64,000 nucleotides of DNA from Camelus ferus (taxonomy: Eukaryota): the NCBI RefSeq assembly GCF_009834535.1, contig NC_045699.1, positions 74,772,001 through 74,836,000 on the forward strand, in the 5' to 3' direction. Made by a program: the position numbers and the translations under genes. Position 1 is the stretch's first letter. Each line of letters starts with the position of its first letter. The notes below the pieces were generated by a model that saw nothing but the letters and a program-made list of their open reading frames with translations, was not told the origin of the DNA and searched no databases. This document shows positions 39,741 to 62,518 of the stretch, in pieces.

Positions 39741-41119
39741 ATGGTGTCGCCGCCGCCGCTGTCGCCGCCGCTCTGCACGCTGCCGCCCGGCCCTGGGCCC
39801 CCGCGCTTCGTGTGCTACTGCGAGGGGGAGGGAAGCGGGGCCGGGGACCGTGGGGCCTTCAACTTCTAGTGAGTAGAGGGGACCGTAGGCCTGTGAGCGG
39901 CGCGGGCAGCTCTGCAGGCGGTCCCGCCTGACAGTTCCCCCCGCCTCCACCAGTGTGACAGACGCCGCGGAGCTTTGGAGCACCTGCTTCACGCCGGACA
40001 GCCTGGCGGCCCTGGTGGGTAACGGGACTCCTGGGCGGCCGGTAGCCCCCAGCACCCAACACCTGCAGGGCGGACCACCTGTGGGATCGAAGGGGGCAGT
40101 CTGGGATTCCCTGGAAGGGTCTGGGCACCCTTCCCACGGCTCTGTAGCTGTGGTCCTAAGATTGGTCACAGGCACATCCGGGTGGGGCAGGTTTGGGGTG
40201 TTCCCAGTGGTTCTAGGGTCTCAGGCACCTGGTGACCAGTCCCTGTGTCCTGTAGAAAGCCCGTTTTGGCCTGAGTGCGGCTGAAGACATCACCTCGCGG
40301 TTCAGGTGAGCCCCTGAGAAGGGAGGAGGGGTGGGTGGGGAGCGAGTGAGTGTGGCCACAGCACTCAGCCACCCTCCTTTCCCAGGGCAGCCTGTGAGCA
40401 GCAAGCTGTGGCTCTCACCCTGCAGGAGGACGGAGCATCCCTGACCCTGTCAGGGGGACCCTCGGTGCTGGGCTTTGACCTCTCCAAGGTGCCAGGCCCA
40501 GAGGCAGCCTCCAGGTTGCAGGCACTGACACTGGGCCTGGCAGAGCGTGTGTGCAGCCTGGAGCGGCGGCTGGCAGGTAGGATGGAGGGTGGGCATCTCA
40601 CACCCTCACTGGGGTCCACCTGCCCCTGCCTCCATTCCGGCTTTTCCCGCAGCTGCTGCGGGGGAGACAGCCACCAGCCCCAGGAAGAGCTCCCGGCCAG
40701 CGGGGCCTCAGCTCTTCTTACCAGGTGAGGCCTGTCACCTATGACTTGGGGTGGCACTGTGCTCATTCCTCTGTGGCTCAGTTTCCCCAGAACAAGCCTC
40801 AAGCTCCAGAGGAAGGATCTGCCTATATGGAAAAGGGGTTGTGGCCCTGGGATTCTGCTGGACTTAGGTGCTCCCCCTCATCCTGTTTCCCCCCAGACCC
40901 GGATCCTCAGAGAAGTGGCCCTGGACCTGGGGTCAAGAGGCGGTGTCCAGGAGAGTCTCTCATCAACCCCGGCTTCAAGAGGTACCCACCCACTCACCCC
41001 TCCCTCCTGCGCCGAGTCCAGCCCCAGACCCTGCCCGTCCCTCCACAACCCTATAGTGTCATCCTCTCTTCTCTCTCAGTAAGAAACCAGCTGGTGGTGT
41101 AGACTTCGATGACCCCTGA
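39741..41119 (+). CDS. PAXX: PAXX non-homologous end-joining factor, 208 aa
   Basis: Exons 39741-39868, 39954-40014, 40256-40305, 40386-40576, 40653-40724, 40897-40981, 41080-41119; 627 nt. VTDAAELWSTCFTPDSLAAL; C-terminal Ku-binding GESLINPGFKSKKPAGGVDFD. Confidence 0.97.
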
Positions 41120-41244
41120 AGGTGCAGCACAAAGTCTGACCCTGCCTGTGAGGGGAGGGGCAGCCTCAAAGACCCTGCCACCTGCACCTGCCCATCCTGC
41201 TGCCCAGCAGGAACAAACCTGCTCCTCGAGCCCCTTTTCCATCA

Positions 41245-41250
41245 AATAAA
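41245..41250 (+). terminator. PAXX polyadenylation signal (AATAAA)
   Basis: 126 bp after the stop. Confidence 0.85.
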
Positions 41251-41918
41251 CATCTTTCTCTGGCAGAAGTCATGGCCATGCTCTGGCTCCTGGGGGCTGG
41301 CTCCAGGAGAGGGCGCAGGGACCCCCCCCCCCCCGCCACTGCCTGTGAGCTGGGCACTGGGCCGCAGAAGGTAAACAGATGCATCAGACTTCGAGCTCCC
41401 AGGTGGAGTTGCCTGAGCTCTCCCGCCCTGCCCAGCTGTCCTGCCTGGCCAGCCCAGGAGCTGACAGGGCTGTGCAAGGCAGGGCCAGGGTTCTGCCAGG
41501 GTGGAACTCTTCCCACCCCACCGGGCACAGGGGCCTACGCCTCAGTGATGCAGACCCCCACGAGGAACACAGTAGATCTTGCAGGAGATGGGAGTGGCCT
41601 GCATGCCACCTGGGGCGGAGCAGAGGAATGTGGGCCCGCCTGTCCTCTGGCCTGGAGCCCTGAGTTGCCCAGATCAGGCTCTGCTCCCCACCCTCCTCGG
41701 CCATCCTTCCACCCTGCCCTGGCCTGACTGGTTTGGGAGCCCAGTCCAGTCCCACCATCCCTGACGAGTAGAGGGATGGCCCCGCCCACCTGGCTCTCCG
41801 CCAATCCTTCCGGGCTGTCCTCTGGAGCTGAGACTCACAGTGGGAGCTTAGAGGTGGCAGAAATCGGGGGGTCCCGGTCCTTCGGATGTGCGGACACACT
41901 CACTGAGGCAGAGATGCC

Positions 41919-41924
41919 TTTATG
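41919..41924 (-). terminator. Probable CLIC3 polyadenylation signal, variant CATAAA
   Basis: Only PAS-like hexamer seen just after the stop on the minus strand. Confidence 0.45.
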
Positions 41925-41967
41925 GGGCTGCAGACGAGTGGGCGGGGTGGCGGGGGAGGCGGGGACG

Positions 41968-43850
41968 CTAGCGAGGGCGCACGGCGGGCCGGTAGGCCGC
42001 CAAGATCTCTGCGCTGTGCGGACACGTGTACTTGAACTCCTTCTCCTGCAGGGCGCTGTCCAGGTAGCGGCGGAGCCCGCGCAGCTCATCCGGGATGGGC
42101 GCCTGGCGGAAGTGCGCGCACACCGTCTACGGGCGCAGGGCGCGGTCAGGGTCTCCTCCAGGGTCTGTCCTGGCCCACCCCGCCCCTCCCGGCCCGGTGC
42201 TCACGTTGACGACGTGCAGCTTGGGCAGCAGGCCGCAGTCGGCCAGCGTGAGCTGATCGCCGTCTAGGAAGCGGCGGCGCGACTCGCGCAGCTTCGGCTC
42301 CCGTACCAGTTCGTGCTCCAGGGGCGCGCGCAGGTAGCTGTCCAGCTTGGCGAGGGCGCGCAGCAGCTGCTGGTACAGGGCTGGGGGCGGGGGAGCGGCA
42401 CGGTGAGGACCCGGCCGGGGGCCACTCCCCTCACCCTCGCCACGCCTCCGGGCCCTCCTCACCATCATCCTGGGCGGGCACTGGGTTCTTGATGTAGGCG
42501 GAGAATTTGTGAAAGACGTCGTTGCCCGCCGCGATGGACTCCCGGTATCTGGGCGCCAGGCTGGGGAATCTGCAGGTGGAGGGGATTCGGGTCAGGCCTT
42601 GGCCGCGCGCTGCAGGCCCACTGTGTCCTTCCTGGGCTCTGTCCTGGAAGTGTCCTTCCTGAGGGCCCCATCTTTGTCCCTCCCACTGGTCCGGGTCCTC
42701 ACTCAGGTGGGCCTAGCGTCTCCTCCAGAAACTCCTCGATCTGCAGCGTGTCCGTTTTGGCGTCACCGTCATAGAGCAGGATGGGCAGCTGCGAGCCAGG
42801 GGCGAAGTCCTTCAGCACATCTGGGGACCTGTGGGCACAAGGCAGGGAGGGAAGCGGCTGGCCCGGGGAGGGCAGAGGCCAGGGAGGGTCCTGGGCAGGC
42901 TTACCTGCGGGTGTCCACGGTGGTGAGGGTGAAGGGCACGCCCTTGAGAAGCAGGATCATGAAAAGCCTCTGACAAGAAGGGCAGTGTCCCACGCTTTCG
43001 CCGTCCTCGCTTGCCTGGAGGGGTGGAGTAGAGGGGCGTCGGGGAGGGAGCAGACCCTGGAATCCTGCCACCAGGCTGGGTGGGACCTGGCCTCCAACTG
43101 CCAAGAGGCTGGCACGGTGCCAGGGCCCCAGCTCAATCCAGCACAGCCTTGACAAGTGGCCGCTGAGGGCCCTTGACTTGGTCCCTGGGAGGTAGGGAGG
43201 GTGCAGAGATGCTGAGGGCCCGAAGACTGGGTGAGGGCACAGGGGTGAGGGGTGTGGAGCAGGACCCTGGTTCTGGGGCCTGGCCCCTTGACCCTTATCT
43301 ACAGAGGCTGGGCCCCTGGGCACCAGGCCCTGCAGGCTGGTGGCAGGGTGGGGTGGGCCAAGTGAGTTGTTTTTTGAGTGATTCATTCTGCCAAACTGGG
43401 CATCCTGCTGCCCTGGGCCCTGAGGGTGGGAGGAGGCCAGGCCCTGGCATCCCCCACACCGGGATCCACAGATCTGGGCCTCAGTGAGGCTGCCTGGCCC
43501 AGGTCCCTTCTGTGCCTCAACCCCAGCCTCACCTGGGCCTGGGCCACTGGCTCCCTGCTTGGCACATCCCTACTAAGGGGTTTTTTCTCCAGGAGGGCTG
43601 GGCAGGGCCCAGGAGTCAAGAGGAAATTGGGCTGGGGCCACCCCCAACCCTTCCCCCCGCTTTGCTGCCCCCACCTTAAGCAGCCTCGGTGGGACAGCCT
43701 GAGCCCACCGCAGGGGAATTAGTGCAGACGCTGTCCCAGAGACCCACCCGCGCCTCAGCCTGCCCGCAGAGAACCCCTTTCCCCAGCCCTCCCCCAGCCC
43801 AGCCAGCCCAGCACCTTGACAAACAGCTGGAGCTTGGCCGTCTCAGCCAT
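41968..43850 (-). CDS. CLIC3: Chloride intracellular channel protein 3, 237 aa
   Basis: Exons 43815-43850, 42905-43014, 42703-42828, 42463-42569, 42205-42380, 41968-42126; 714 nt. [22 protein letters not shown] active-site motif; [18 protein letters not shown]. Confidence 0.97.
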
Positions 43851-47264: not shown

Positions 47265-50200
47265 TCAGCAGAGCGTGTCTGTGTTGAAGGAGAGCTGGGC
47301 CTGGTGGACAGCAGACAGGCCTGGCTTGGGACGTCTGACACCCTCCCCCCAGAACTGGGCCTGCCGCTGGCTCACCCCACTCCAGACCTGAGCTTTCTCA
47401 GTGGTGGGCACCCCACGTGGCCCCTCTGCTAGTCTGGTGGCTGCTGTCCCCAGGCTCTGCTCCCTACACCTCTGCTCAGTGTTGTGGTGTCTGGGGTGGG
47501 GCTGTCCCCTCTGCCTGTGCCCACGCCTCCCATGTCCATTCTGGTCCTGAACATCAGGTGGGTCCCTCTGTCCCCTGGAGCTCGGGACAGCAGGGGCCCC
47601 AGGGCCACTCCCCTCCAGCCCCTCCAACATCCAGAGCCTGAGCCCTGAGGCCTGCCCAGCTGCCTGACCCGCCAGACCCCGCTCACCCGCTCCTCCTCGA
47701 AGCTAATGAGGCCCTCGTCCTCCGTGTCCAGGTCCTCGGGCTCATCAGCCACGAGTGCCCGCAGCTCGGTGGGGGTGGGTCGGGGCCGGAGCAGGCTGAG
47801 TAGGCGGCCCAGGGGGGACTGCAGGGCTGAGGGCGGCTCTGTCTCCTGCTGCTCTAGGTTGTCGCTCTGCTTCTTGGCAAAGTTCACGAACACCTGGTGG
47901 GCGTGGGCAGGTGGGTGGGCGGGGCCGGCCCAGCGGAGCCCCGGAGCCCCGCCCCCGGCACTCACGTTGTCCAGGGTGGTCTGGCTGACCGAGTAGTCCT
48001 GGATGCCCAGCACGCCCGCCACCTGCTCCATCTTGCTGAACACTTGTGCCAGCGAGATGTGCTCCGACTTGAGCTGGTACTGCACCTTCGTGTGGTGCCG
48101 CTCCTGTGGGGCACAGGGGTCAGAGGCCGCTCGGGCAGTGGCGCCCCCCACCGCGCCCCAGCCCCAGGGGCCCCCCCACCTTGAGCACAGCCTCAGGGAA
48201 GTTCCTGTTGAAGAACCGCACCACGTCCTTCACGTTCTGGCTACTCTTGGTCCTCACTGTGATCATGTAGCCGTCCCCGAACCTGCGGGACAGGCCCATG
48301 GCCCAAGCACCAGCCGCAGGGAGTCCGGCCTCCCCCCGCCGCAGCCCCCACAGCCCGCCCCCGCGCAGCACCACTGCTCACCGGTTCTTCAGGTGCTGGA
48401 TGCTGCCCAGACAGCGCAGGCGCCCATTCACCATGATGGCCAGCCGTGTGCACAGAGCCTCGCACTCCTCCATGCTGCGGGCAGAGACACGCTGGCTGGC
48501 ACAGACAGAGGGGGGCACTGGGGGCGTTGGGGAGGAGAAGGCCGGGGGAGTGTGCACCTGTGAGACGTCAGCACCACCGAGCGCCCCGTCTTGATGAGGT
48601 CCAAAATGAGGTTCCAGAGGAAGCGCCGGGCCTTGGGGTCCATGCCTGTGGTGGGCTCATCCTGGGGGTGGTGCCAGGCTCAGCTGCTGTACCCCATTCA
48701 CCCCAGCTGGCCCCACCCTCTGCTTCCAGGCTCACCGGGAAGATGAAGGTGGGGTAGCGGACCCCCATCCCACCCCAGCTCACCAGGAAGATGAAGGCGG
48801 GGTACCCGATGAGGGCAATGGCTGTGGACAGTTTGCGCTTGTTGCCTCCGCTGTAGGTGCCGGCAGGCTTGTCAGCATACTTGGTCAGCTCCAGCTTCTC
48901 CAGGGCCCACGTCACCACCTGGGAGCGAGAGCGGATGTCAGGGGCCCACCCTCTACAGCAGCCCCCTCCCCCGAGGGGCAGCCCTCACCCGGGCCTCGTC
49001 CTTCCAGGGGACACCCCGGAGCCGCGTGTACAGCTGCAGGTGCTCCCGGGCCGTGAGCTCGTCAAACAGGGCGTCAAACTGTGGGCAGTACCCGAGGCTC
49101 TGCTGCACCTGGAGCAGCTCCTTGAGCACGCTGGGGACACAGAGCCGTCAGCCCCGTCGCCGCGGTCTCCGCGGTCGCCCGGCCCCCGAGCCCCCGCCCG
49201 CCTGCACCTGTGCCCATTGACGAAGGCCTCGCCCCCTGTTGTGCTCTCGTCACCCGTCAACATCTTGAAGGTGCTGGTCTTGCCCGCGCCATTGACGCCC
49301 AGGAGGCCAAAGCACTCGCCAGGACGCACACCTAGACACAGGCGGTCCACTGCCAGGATGCGGCCGATCTTCCGCGACTTGTACACCTGGCAGAGGTGAG
49401 GGGGCAGCTGGCTCAGCGGGGCGTGTCCACCTGGGCCCCGCCCCACCAGGGCCGGGCCCCACCTTGGTCAGGTTCTCAATTTTGACCATGTCGTTGTCAG
49501 CATCCCCCCGCAGCACACGCTGCCGCTCGCTGGCCACGTCCACGTCATCCTCCACGGGCTTCGTCGACACTGGCATGCGCCTGGGGGGACAGGGTGGGCA
49601 GTGCCCGGCTGGATCACCCCGCATTGTCCCGTGCTCCCCCACTCACCGTGGCCACGGTAGGAAGGTGGGCAGTGCCAGGCCCCCCGCCCTGCACCGTCCG
49701 TCCAGGACGCCCCCACTCACTGTGGCTGCCGCAGAAAGTTATACTGACACACGATGGTGAGGAGGAAGCCCACGAAGCCCTCGACTGTCATGGCCACCAA
49801 CCCCCTGGTGACAATGTCCCACTCGAACGGGGACTTCATCTTGTCGAACTGGCCTGTGGGGCAGCTGGCTGAGGGCCGTGCCCGGGGCCTCGGGAGCCCC
49901 TCCTCGGCCCATGCCTGGAGCTCCCTGGTCTCCCTCGGCCCCCTGTCCAGGGGCGCTGGCTCTCCCCCCTCCACCCGCNNNNNNNNNNNNNNNNNNNNNN
50001 NNNNNNNNNNNNNNNNNNNNNNNNNNNNNNNNNNNNNNNNNNNNNNNNNNNNNNNNNNNNNNNNNNNNNNNNNNNNNNNNNNNNNNNNNNNNNNNNNNNN
50101 NNNNNNNNNNNNNNNNNNNNNNNNNNGGGGTCATGGCACAGCCTCAGCCCCACCGTCCCGCTGCCCACCGCCTGGCCGCCCCCCACCTGGCCCACCTTGT

Positions 50201-59200: not shown

Positions 59201-62200
59201 CGCGGTGGTGTTGGGGCCCACGCCCGCCCCAGCCCCAGTGCCATTGGCCGCCCCACCAGGGCTGCCGCCTGGGGGCACCGGAGTCCGGCCGGTGCAGGCG
59301 CCCTGAGGCAGCAGCAGGGCCAGGGCCGAGAGGACGTCCACGTCCTGCAGAACTTTCTGGGCATCCAGCAGGTCCTCCAGCAGCGCCTGCAGCCGCCGTG
59401 GGGGTGGTGGCTGCTGCTGGGAGGCGGAGCCGTTGGGGGCATCCAGGTCCAGCTGAGGAGAAATGGGGCCAGTGGGGAAACGCAGGCTCAGGGAAGGGAC
59501 CAGGATCTGGGGCTGATCTGCAGCTGGGTGCTGAGGTCGGGGGCAGAACATGGAGGACACCAGCAGGGGACACAGGCTGAGAGGAAGGGAACAGCCTGCG
59601 GGTGAGGGGAGCCCCAGCTGGGGGCTGGGTGACACAGACTGGGACCAAGGCATGGAGCAGGGCAGGGGCACAAGGCACCCCCATGCAGAGCCTGGGCCCA
59701 GGAGTCCCCTGTGATGCCAAGGAGCCCCAGCACCTCCTCCAGCCCAGGCAGCTGATCCGAGGGCCAGCTGGCAGGCAGGGCCTAACCTGCTGGGCGATCT
59801 TGGGCACATCCAGCTGGTTCCGGAGCTCTGCAGCCAGCTCAGAAAAGCGCCGGGCACGCGCTGCAGCCTGCCCACTGCAGACAGTGTCCCGGTAGCCCTG
59901 CAGCGCTGTCTGCTGACCCTGGGGCACAGTGAGGATCCGGCCTAGCTCCCTGGAGCCAGGCGAGCACGTGAGCTGCTCCAGGAGGGTGGGGGCCAACAGC
60001 AGCTCCTGGGGGCAGGGGCAGGGGACAGCTGAGAAGGAGCCCCGATGGAGAGAAAACCAGGGGCCTGGCCTGAGGTGACCTCAGGCCTTCCCTTCCCCAC
60101 CCACTGTGCCAGGCCTGAAACCACCCAGGTTGTGCATTGTGGGGTAGGGTGTAAGAATGGACACACATCACCATCCTGCCTGCTCCCTCCCCATGCCAGC
60201 CACAGACTCCCAGGGACCCTCCCTCACCTCCAAGGGGATCCCTTTCTTCACCCACCCAGGAGCACGCAGCACGTCTCCCACCCCACTGCAAGTCCCCCTC
60301 ACCTCCATCTGGAATAGCGGGTTGCTACCCTTGTGGCTCCAGGGCTTCTGATTCCTGGGGAGGCCTGACCCCACATCCAGGGCAGGTGAAGGGCCAAAAA
60401 CCAGACGATAGACCTGGAGTGTGAGGGGGCCATGGTCAGGCCGATGGCTCTAGAGCCCCACATGCCCCCACCCCCACTCCTGCAACCGGGGGAGGGCAGA
60501 GCAGCGTGGCCAGGGCTGGCAGCCACAGCAAGAGCAGACACAGGCTCGTGGCTGATGCCCGCCCCGTCTCACCTCGGGCAGGTCCACCTGGGCAACCAGG
60601 AAAGCCTGGGCTGTGCTGTTAGGCAGCGACAGGTTCTGCGTCAGGAAGCGCCAGAGCTCCCTCGGGTCCCTGGCCACCGAGTCCAGAGAGAAGGAGGACA
60701 CTGGACAGGCAGAAAGACAGGGCTGAAGGCCAGCCCTGCCCGGGGCCGAAGCACCCCAGACAGACTCAGAGCTGTGCCCAGGACACCACAGCTCAGCCCC
60801 TGGGGCCACTGGTTGGGCCACACCCGGAGCACTTGTGCCCTGGGAACTCAGGGCAATGGGTCAGAGGGCGGGGCCTGAGGCACAGACACAGGCCCGTGGC
60901 AGGAAGTGACCGAGGCAGGGCACGAACCCAGCTGACGGCAGAGCTCGGGCACAGCCCCCCAGCGCTGGCTCCGCCCCACCTGCCTGAGGCGCACCTGAAG
61001 GTCTGCTCAAGCGGCTCTCCCAGGCGTCCGGGCCCGAGCTGAGGGCCTCCAGGTGCCGGCGCAGCGCCTCGAGCTCCGAGCCCAGGCTGGGCCTCGCCGG
61101 GTCAAATAGGTTGCCTTCCTCTACCACGCGGCTGAGGCGCTCCAGCAGCTGTGTGACCCTGCACCACCACCGGATGTCACCCGCAGGTCACCAGGCCTGG
61201 GCTGGGGGGAGGGGCAGCAGGGGTCCCCAGGGGACACTCACGTGGAGTTGGCGTACTGAAGGAAGCCAAACTCATCCCGCTGGCCATCTGGGCACAGTGA
61301 CTGCATCACGGGCAGGATGCCGGCGGAGGTGAGGGGGGCTGCCGTGTAGAAGGCTGAAGGGCGGTGGGGGACAGGGCAGGTGAGAGGGCCCAGGGCAGGG
61401 GGAGAAAGGAATCAAGAAAGGGAAGGGAGACAGAGGCCAAGAAGAGAGATTTAGAGAAAGTCAGGAAGGGAAAGCAGCTTCAGGCAGCAGACAGGAAACA
61501 GAGGGCTGAGAGTTCTAGTGCAAATGACCTCAGCAGGTCAGAGGTCAAAGGGCATCTCGCCATCCCTACCCCACAACTCCTAGAGCATCCCCCTTCCCTC
61601 AGCCAGCCAAGGCCAAAATGCCCTGACACTTCCCCAAAGAATCTGGCTGTGGCACTGCCCACAGAGCCCAGGGGAGCACTGGGGCCCCTACCAGGCAGCG
61701 ACCTCTGACCTCTCTGGCCAGCTGGTTAGTGGATGGAATGCAGGAGCCCACAAGGATCTGAGGGGAGAGCAGCAGGGCCCCCCTTGCCAGGCAACCCTAC
61801 AGAGAGGGAGACACCTGGGATCTGGACCTGGGGGCCCCTGTGGTCTGGGTGGCTCCATCCTTCACCAGCCACCACCCCATCCCCCACCAAGAGCCAGCTG
61901 CTCCTGAGAGCGGGCAGGGGCCTCTGCGAGACCGGCTGGCCAGGAAAGGCTGTTAATGCAAGCGATGGGGTGGGAGGGGGGCTCAAGCCGCAACAGGGGG
62001 CGCCGCAGGGCCGTCCTGTGGCTGCCGCCTGGGCCAGCAAGGAGGAGGCGGCCGCTCACTTACAGACTGCATGCAGGCCGAGGAGGAGGAGGAGGAGGAG
62101 GAGGAGGAGGAGGACAAGAGACCGTGCGGGGGAGGGGCAAAACAGAACAGAGGAGAGCAGTGAGAAACTGGTGCCTCGGTCACTCTCGGCCACCACGGCG

Positions 62201-62518
62201 GACCACATCCTCCAGTCCAGCCAGGAGGCACGGCCAGGGACCATGAGGGGGAACAGGCACGCGGACTCAACGGGGAGGAGCCGTGGGAGCTGGTTCCCAC
62301 CGATGCGGCCATGTGCACACAGGACATGCGCGCGTGGGTGATGCAGTGAGGGCTGCCTGCCCTGCCCCGCCCACCCCGCTGGAACCTGGTCCCTGGTCCC
62401 CCTCCCCCACCAAAGGACCCTCACCTTCCTTTACAGAGATGGTTGGTTTCTTCTGCCGAAGCCCCAGCAGGATGAAGAAGAGGACCAGAGGGATGAAAAT
62501 CTCGAAAGCCAAGACCCA
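47265..62518 (-). CDS. ABCA2: ATP-binding cassette transporter A2 (5'-partial; start exon beyond 64000)
   Basis: Exons 5'->3': 62425-62518, [62064-62066], 61242-61353, 60995-61158, 60573-60700, 60303-60413, 59787-60005, 59085-59452, 58734-58893, 57754-57882, 57488-57655, 57321-57417, 56996-57169, 56825-56927, 56629-56743, 56135-56325, 55885-56035, 55608-55812, 55329-55493, 55058-55238, 54741-54953, 54455-54651, 54188-54370, 53839-54023, 53327-53447, 52817-53053, 52529-52735, 52185-52287, 51763-52082, 51479-51692, 51282-51387, 51073-51184, 50937-50997, 50682-50856, 50423-50538, 50196-50343, [gap], 49721-49853, 49463-49580, 49208-49386, 48989-49130, 48784-48918, 48558-48661, 48382-48474, 48180-48282, 47966-48103, 47687-47893, 47265-47300. 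Two Walker A ([16 protein letters not shown]), LSGGMK/YSGGNK signatures, ends SFNTDTLC*. Confidence 0.97.
48730..48809 (-). repeat. 48-bp-period duplication of an ABCA2 exon end plus donor
   Basis: 48730-48761 vs 48778-48809 are 28/32 identical, both with GTGAG donors. Confidence 0.92.
49979..50126. other. Assembly gap (148 N) hiding one ABCA2 coding exon
   Basis: Upstream exon ends in phase 0 (EHDK) and the downstream exon starts in phase 1 (G|QFDK), so a 3n+1 exon is required. Confidence 0.9.
62064..62066 (-). CDS. ABCA2: 3-nt ABCA2 microexon (TCT)
   Basis: Minus strand: long pyrimidine tract..ctgcatgcAG|TCT|GTAAGT. Inclusion converts VKE-A-FYT to VKE-VS-FYT in frame. Confidence 0.85.
62080..62113 (-). 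repeat. (CTC)11 repeat within the microexon polypyrimidine tract
   Basis: (GAG)11 on the + strand. Confidence 0.93.

Follow-up and report, generated by a model that had tools for sequence, protein, structure and literature searches.

Analysis of the window (the whole 64,000-nucleotide stretch of DNA studied here) reveals a three-nucleotide exon, TCT, within the ABCA2 gene, which is very probably the ortholog of the alternative 3-nt ABCA2 microexon catalogued in human (VastDB event HsaEX0000256; UniProt isoform Q9BZC7-3 versus Q9BZC7-1). The exon is already catalogued and annotated for human and is not a new kind of element. It is a clean case of a 3-nt exon with a deeply conserved splice-site core. 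In our reading, it is an alternative microexon that is widely used, with graded inclusion and a modest neuronal/SRRM4 contribution. Conservation and orthology suggest that TCT would also be included in transcripts of the species analysed.

Anatomy of the microexon and its flanks

ABCA2 of mammalian type is located on the minus strand of the window, with its stop codon near position 47268. The gene extends past 62518, and the window does not include its first coding exon. Among the proteins retrieved, Camelus ABCA2 is the closest (97% over the exon matches). The long exon upstream of the microexon (Table 1) encodes the first transmembrane helix (TM1) and ends with SVKE followed by the first base (G) of a split codon; it is 94% identical to fish ABCA2 and is also matched by mammalian ABCA2 proteins. 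The interval between this exon, ending at 62425, and the next long one, starting at 61353, is 1,071 nt in length, and the minus strand around the microexon reads ...cggccTGCATGCAG-TCT-GTAAGTgagcgg.

Joining the exons in silico with TCT results in SVKE-VS-FYTAAPL, whereas skipping of TCT completes the split codon as G-CC and gives the Ala form; the reading frame is kept either way. Because TCT splits a codon, one residue is replaced by two and not simply inserted. The original prediction of a frame-preserving ABCA2 microexon that exchanges Ala for Val-Ser agrees with this outcome, and the elements which it described on the minus strand, namely a pyrimidine-rich tract with (CTC)11, TGCATG, UGC and AG-TCT-GTAAGT, are all present in their predicted place. 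Elsewhere in ABCA2, a run of 148 N (49979-50126) lies between exons that code for the second transmembrane domain.

Table 1. Features of the ABCA2 microexon region in the window, and the corresponding microexons of six other vertebrates.
Feature	Position	Strand	Remarks
ABCA2 coding exon with TM1	62425..62518	-	ends ...GTA AAG GAA G, then donor G-gtgagg
Upstream intron, TM1 exon to microexon	62067..62424	-	358 nt
Candidate distal branch point CTCAC	62160..62164	-	A at 62161; 98 nt upstream of microexon
Pyrimidine-rich AG-exclusion zone	62069..62167	-	85% C/T
(TCC)11 microsatellite in pyrimidine tract	62082..62114	-	equals (CTC)11 in the other register
TGCATG, RBFOX-type motif	62070..62075	-	-9 to -4; overlaps UGC-AG of 3' splice site
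3-nt microexon TCT	62066-62064	-	in frame: G+TC, T+CC = Val-Ser; counterpart T[C/G]T in six further species
Donor GTAAGT	62058..62063	-	full consensus for intron +1 to +6; invariant in seven species
Downstream intron	61354..62063	-	710 nt
Next ABCA2 coding exon	61242..61353	-	acceptor ttcag, first bases CC TTC TAC ACG
Tiger microexon			TCT
Manatee microexon			TCT
Pika microexon			TCT
Lizard microexon			TCT
Bowfin microexon			TCT
Milkfish microexon			TGT, Val-Ser all the same

Conservation of the splice-site core

The genomic loci of six orthologs, from tiger, manatee, pika, lizard, bowfin and milkfish, were compared with the window. Each of the six homologous introns contains exactly one AG-TNT-GTAAGT, situated after a pyrimidine-rich tract. 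Together with the window, CAG-T.T-GTAAGT is invariant in all seven species, and conservation of cag-TCT-gtaagt, which had been proposed as a check on the original prediction, is thus observed. The lizard and bowfin copies are independent of annotation, since the gene models of these two species begin downstream of the region. Comparison of these loci indicates that the splice-site core has stayed frozen since bony vertebrates last shared an ancestor. Alignment of the four mammals reveals that GCATGCAGTCTGTAAGTGA is invariant in an interval where just 18% of the columns are, and the block containing it is among the three best-conserved 40-nt windows of the interval.

Two protein forms in databases

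Search with the luminal-domain exon identified full-length fish ABCA2, and the N-terminus of this protein was used as a query. It retrieved 120 teleost entries, 99 of which carry VKEA[FY]Y and 12 VKEVSFYS; for ray-finned fishes overall the Val-Ser form is found in 13 entries against about 110 for the Ala form. For mammals the query was a 40-residue stretch in which a fish protein does not differ from the window. Among the approximately 60 mammalian entries retrieved, 15 have SVKEVSFYTAAP (VKEVSFYT) and 30 have SVKEAFYTAAP, many of them being X-isoforms of the same species. Isoform counts across species are not independent, and isoforms of non-model species are mostly automatic models. Two marsupial entries show VS and VA, respectively. 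The difference between VKEVSFYT and VKEAFYT, which the original prediction gave for ABCA2 reference proteins, is therefore real at the level of database proteins, which include both forms. Isoform X3 of Macaca mulatta ABCA2 has neither of them but reads SVKE-GEP-FYT at the junction; the GEP is probably a model artefact or the product of a different donor.

Human ortholog and its inclusion

The human ABCA2 microexon is listed as HsaEX0000256 at chr9:137023838-137023840, with a length of 3 and class MIC (PMC7935315 S3 Data, Head et al. 2021). NM_001606.5 / Q9BZC7-3 has Val-Ser where the canonical Q9BZC7-1 has Ala, at positions 54-55 (PMC13380727). The human exon and the TCT of the window are alike in gene, intron, 3-nt length, Val-Ser/Ala outcome and flanks (SVKE and FYTAAPL), but the window comes from another species and has a (TCC)11 expansion within its pyrimidine tract. 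The one-residue offset between the two forms matters in practice because clinical variant numbering follows the microexon-containing transcript while the UniProt canonical protein lacks the microexon.

The inclusion values and the data on SRRM4 all come from human, and the PSI of a 3-nt exon hinges on junction-library mapping. The kidney table, which is one of nine tissue sheets in the source, gives a mean PSI of 59.7 for healthy samples and 75.4 for tumours (P = 1.7e-17; PMC7935315 S3 Data). PSI is 19.88 in day-50 neurons and 1.57 in neural precursors (NPC), and in MCF7 cells it is 30.09 with a deletion-mutant (inactive) SRRM4 and 40.6 with the wild type, a gain of 10.5 points (PMC7935315 S9 Data). 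Human inclusion is thus intermediate and graded by cell type, it is not neural-specific, and SRRM4 gives a modest boost.

The gene-named S4 Data list of the same study (HEK293, SRRM4 versus GFP, sheet 'Inclusion') does not contain ABCA2, nor does the excerpt of its gene-named S6 Data list (wild-type versus deletion-mutant SRRM4 in cancer cell lines), in which the smallest change is about 25 points (PMC7935315). The supplements of PMC7821500, PMC4317164 and PMC12626424, among them those of a zebrafish study on conserved neuronal microexons, likewise gave no ABCA2 entry. Our literature search found no main text that pairs ABCA2 with 'microexon', and discussion of the exon in main texts was confined to a one-sentence isoform note in PMC13380727.

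Intronic signals around the microexon

The 98 nt preceding the AG at 62068-67 are 85% pyrimidine, and the sequence is AG-free for 101 nt; in the five species measured, the AG-free zone is 72-164 nt long. CTCAC, which we infer to be the branch point, is invariant in the four mammals, where it is located at -64 to -98. UGC is present at -5 and -9, and at 62071-69 it directly abuts the AG; a UGC no further than 15 nt from the 3' splice site is common to the species compared. GCATG is found at -8 in all four mammals and at -14/-25 in milkfish, and bowfin has TGCATG. GCAUG is thus present within 30 nt upstream in six of the seven species, lizard being the exception. Scanning of five species revealed no GCAUG downstream within +300 nt of the microexon, and in these species the motifs sit upstream only, at -8 to -48.

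Tiger, manatee and pika retain a second upstream GCATG, located between -32 and -48, whereas the window has GCACG in its place (62127-62123, minus strand), which means that one of two RBFOX-type motifs has been lost here. The number of units in the (TCC)n run differs between the window (11), tiger (3), manatee (5) and pika (0), and this variation indicates that the run is not a conserved element. The earlier suggestion that splicing might be tuned by repeat length therefore finds no comparative support. Folding of the microexon region gave z = -0.01, and we propose no structure for the exon itself.

Definition of the exon and regulatory readings

With only 3 nt there is no room for exonic enhancers, and the anatomy implies that definition of the exon would have to come from its intronic flanks. 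The candidates for this role are the perfect GUAAGU donor, the invariant YGCAUGCAG 3' splice site, the long AG-free pyrimidine tract and the distal CUCAC branch point. The full-consensus donor may compensate for the non-consensus exonic UCU, and the two short flanking introns may also help in defining the exon. The conserved upstream (U)GCAUG and the C/U-rich elements probably act as handles for tissue modulation. With RBFOX or PTBP bound at the 3' splice site, or across it, inclusion should decrease. Single-codon-sized cassettes that are intron-defined and widely conserved are also known from the 3-nt microexons of TLN1 (PMC4317164) and NSFL1C (HsaEX0043901, PMC7935315) and from Drosophila hth micro-Ex8 (PMC7392893), which belong, however, to other genes and protein contexts.

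One alternative to our reading is that the exon is broadly included and is repressed by RBFOX and/or PTBP through the upstream GCAUG and the C/U-rich tract. By the usual position rule, an RBFOX-type motif over the 3' splice site predicts repression and not activation. In favour of this alternative are GCAUG within 30 nt upstream in six of the seven species, with none downstream in the five scanned, and the long AG-exclusion zone with its distal branch point. Furthermore, PTBP1 has been reported to mostly repress alternative micro-exons via pyrimidine tracts (PMC4317164). Such repression predicts that PSI is lower where RBFOX is abundant, as in neurons and muscle, than in tissues resembling kidney, and human neurons (20%) are indeed below kidney (60%). 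However, the lowest PSI is that of NPCs (1.6%), which simple RBFOX repression does not predict, and lizard has no GCAUG. We consider this explanation possible but doubtful.

UGC beside the 3' splice site together with an upstream C/U-rich element is the arrangement of nSR100/SRRM4 targets. The original prediction saw in these signals a switch-like neural microexon dependent on SRRM3/4 (eMIC) and RBFOX, which neurons would include and glia, like other tissues, would skip. As for the signals themselves, UGC is indeed present, as are the C/U-rich tract and a strong donor, but the RBFOX part does not hold in the expected form, since GCAUG is upstream only. GCAUG enrichment at alternative micro-exons is downstream (PMC4317164), and the nearby downstream (U)GCAUG that characterises RBFOX-enhanced micro-exons is absent in the five species scanned.

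Length within 3-27 nt, a UGC no more than about 20 nt from the 3' splice site (here at -5 and -9), a C/U-rich element upstream, a strong donor and deep vertebrate conservation are all features that the exon shares with eMIC neural microexons. The rise of human PSI from 1.6 in NPCs to 19.9 in day-50 neurons and the increase with active SRRM4 in MCF7 also point in this direction. Unlike eMIC microexons, which have low PSI outside the nervous system and gain strongly on SRRM4 expression, the human ABCA2 exon shows substantial inclusion outside neural tissue and where SRRM4 is not active. It reaches about 60% in kidney and 75% in kidney tumours in the kidney sheet of a study themed on SRRM4 silencing in tumours, and 30% in MCF7 with inactive SRRM4. 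Its response to SRRM4 is about 10 points, whereas typical targets in the PMC7935315 tables go from 0 to 80-90, and ABCA2 is missing from the S4 list and the S6 excerpt of SRRM4-responsive events as well as from the supplements of the zebrafish study. A neuron versus glia switch is thus not supported by the human values for kidney, MCF7 and neurons (about 60%, 30% and 20%), and the SRRM4 perturbation in human MCF7 cells yielded only a small gain. Taken as a whole, the neural-switch interpretation has partial support. We regard a switch-like neural microexon as improbable, and the reading of a broadly used exon with graded inclusion is preferred.

Chance and artefact

In 128 kb (both strands), AG-NNN-GTRAGT has 3 copies, and only the copy described here has a pyrimidine-rich upstream sequence (0.88). 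AG-TNT-GT is the sole form able to yield Val-Ser, and AGTNTGT occurs as a single copy in the 1,071-nt intron. Neither an alternative donor (the next bases are gtg) nor an alternative acceptor (the previous bases are cag) can give TCT, which leaves a separate exon as the sole source of the Val-Ser transcript. The TCT microexon is far above chance expectation.

That AG and GT were juxtaposed by chance, or that an annotation artefact has spread among automatic gene models without any real exon, is effectively refuted already and has a negligible probability: the non-human isoforms are mostly automatic predictions, but the core is unchanged over about 400 million years in seven genomes, two of them with gene models that do not reach the region, human PSI is based on reads from thousands of samples, curated human RefSeq and UniProt isoforms exist, and AG-TNT-GTRAGT was found in 0 of 2,000 shuffled introns.

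Position in the protein

ABCA2 is a lysosomal/endosomal lipid transporter. About 10 residues separate the microexon site from TM1, which places it where the first luminal/extracellular domain starts, as had been predicted. In alignments to relatives of solved structure, it corresponds to HECHFP, a segment that follows TM1 where the first extracytoplasmic domain starts in ABCA4 and ABCA7. Spacing in the Ala form equals that of these two proteins, whereas the Val-Ser form has one residue more. Inclusion of TCT lengthens the linker from the TM1 helix to the first luminal domain by one residue. The PDB copy searched contained no ABCA2 structure. The fact that the core has been frozen since the bony-vertebrate ancestor argues that the Val-Ser form does something that the Ala form does not.

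An inverted repeat in the downstream intron

Downstream of the microexon, the intron that leads to the next exon contains two further blocks that are invariant in the four mammals, AGAGGTCAGAGGTC at 61713-61700 and GACCTCTGACCT at 61546-61535 (minus strand). They form a perfect 12-nt inverted repeat with arms about 165 nt apart. Both the minimum free energy (MFE) and the centroid folds pair the two arms in all four mammals, with a duplex of -30 to -39 kcal/mol. Changes in pika have occurred on both arms, and the pairing is kept there as G.U. The downstream conserved segment as a whole gave a z of only -1.09, and the inverted-repeat blocks are not in the milkfish intron. Instead of a stem, AGAGGTCAGAGGTC and GACCTCTGACCT could equally be two DR1-like nuclear-receptor sites.

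One can speculate that the CAG-TNT-GUAAGU core, the upstream GCAUG/UGC and the downstream 12-bp stem constitute an ancient module which grades the Val-Ser/Ala ratio by cell type (for example neurons, oligodendrocytes and kidney). The linker residue might then alter lipid handling by ABCA2, and (TCC)11 might shift the set-point in this lineage by moving the branch point about 30 nt further away. We think it unlikely that this whole scheme is correct.

Downstream of ABCA2, the window contains a CLIC-like open reading frame at about 42127-42468. In the bowfin locus (39832-43649), a CLIC-like gene and PAXX come after ABCA2, and the presence of a CLIC-like gene or open reading frame downstream of ABCA2 in both suggests old synteny.
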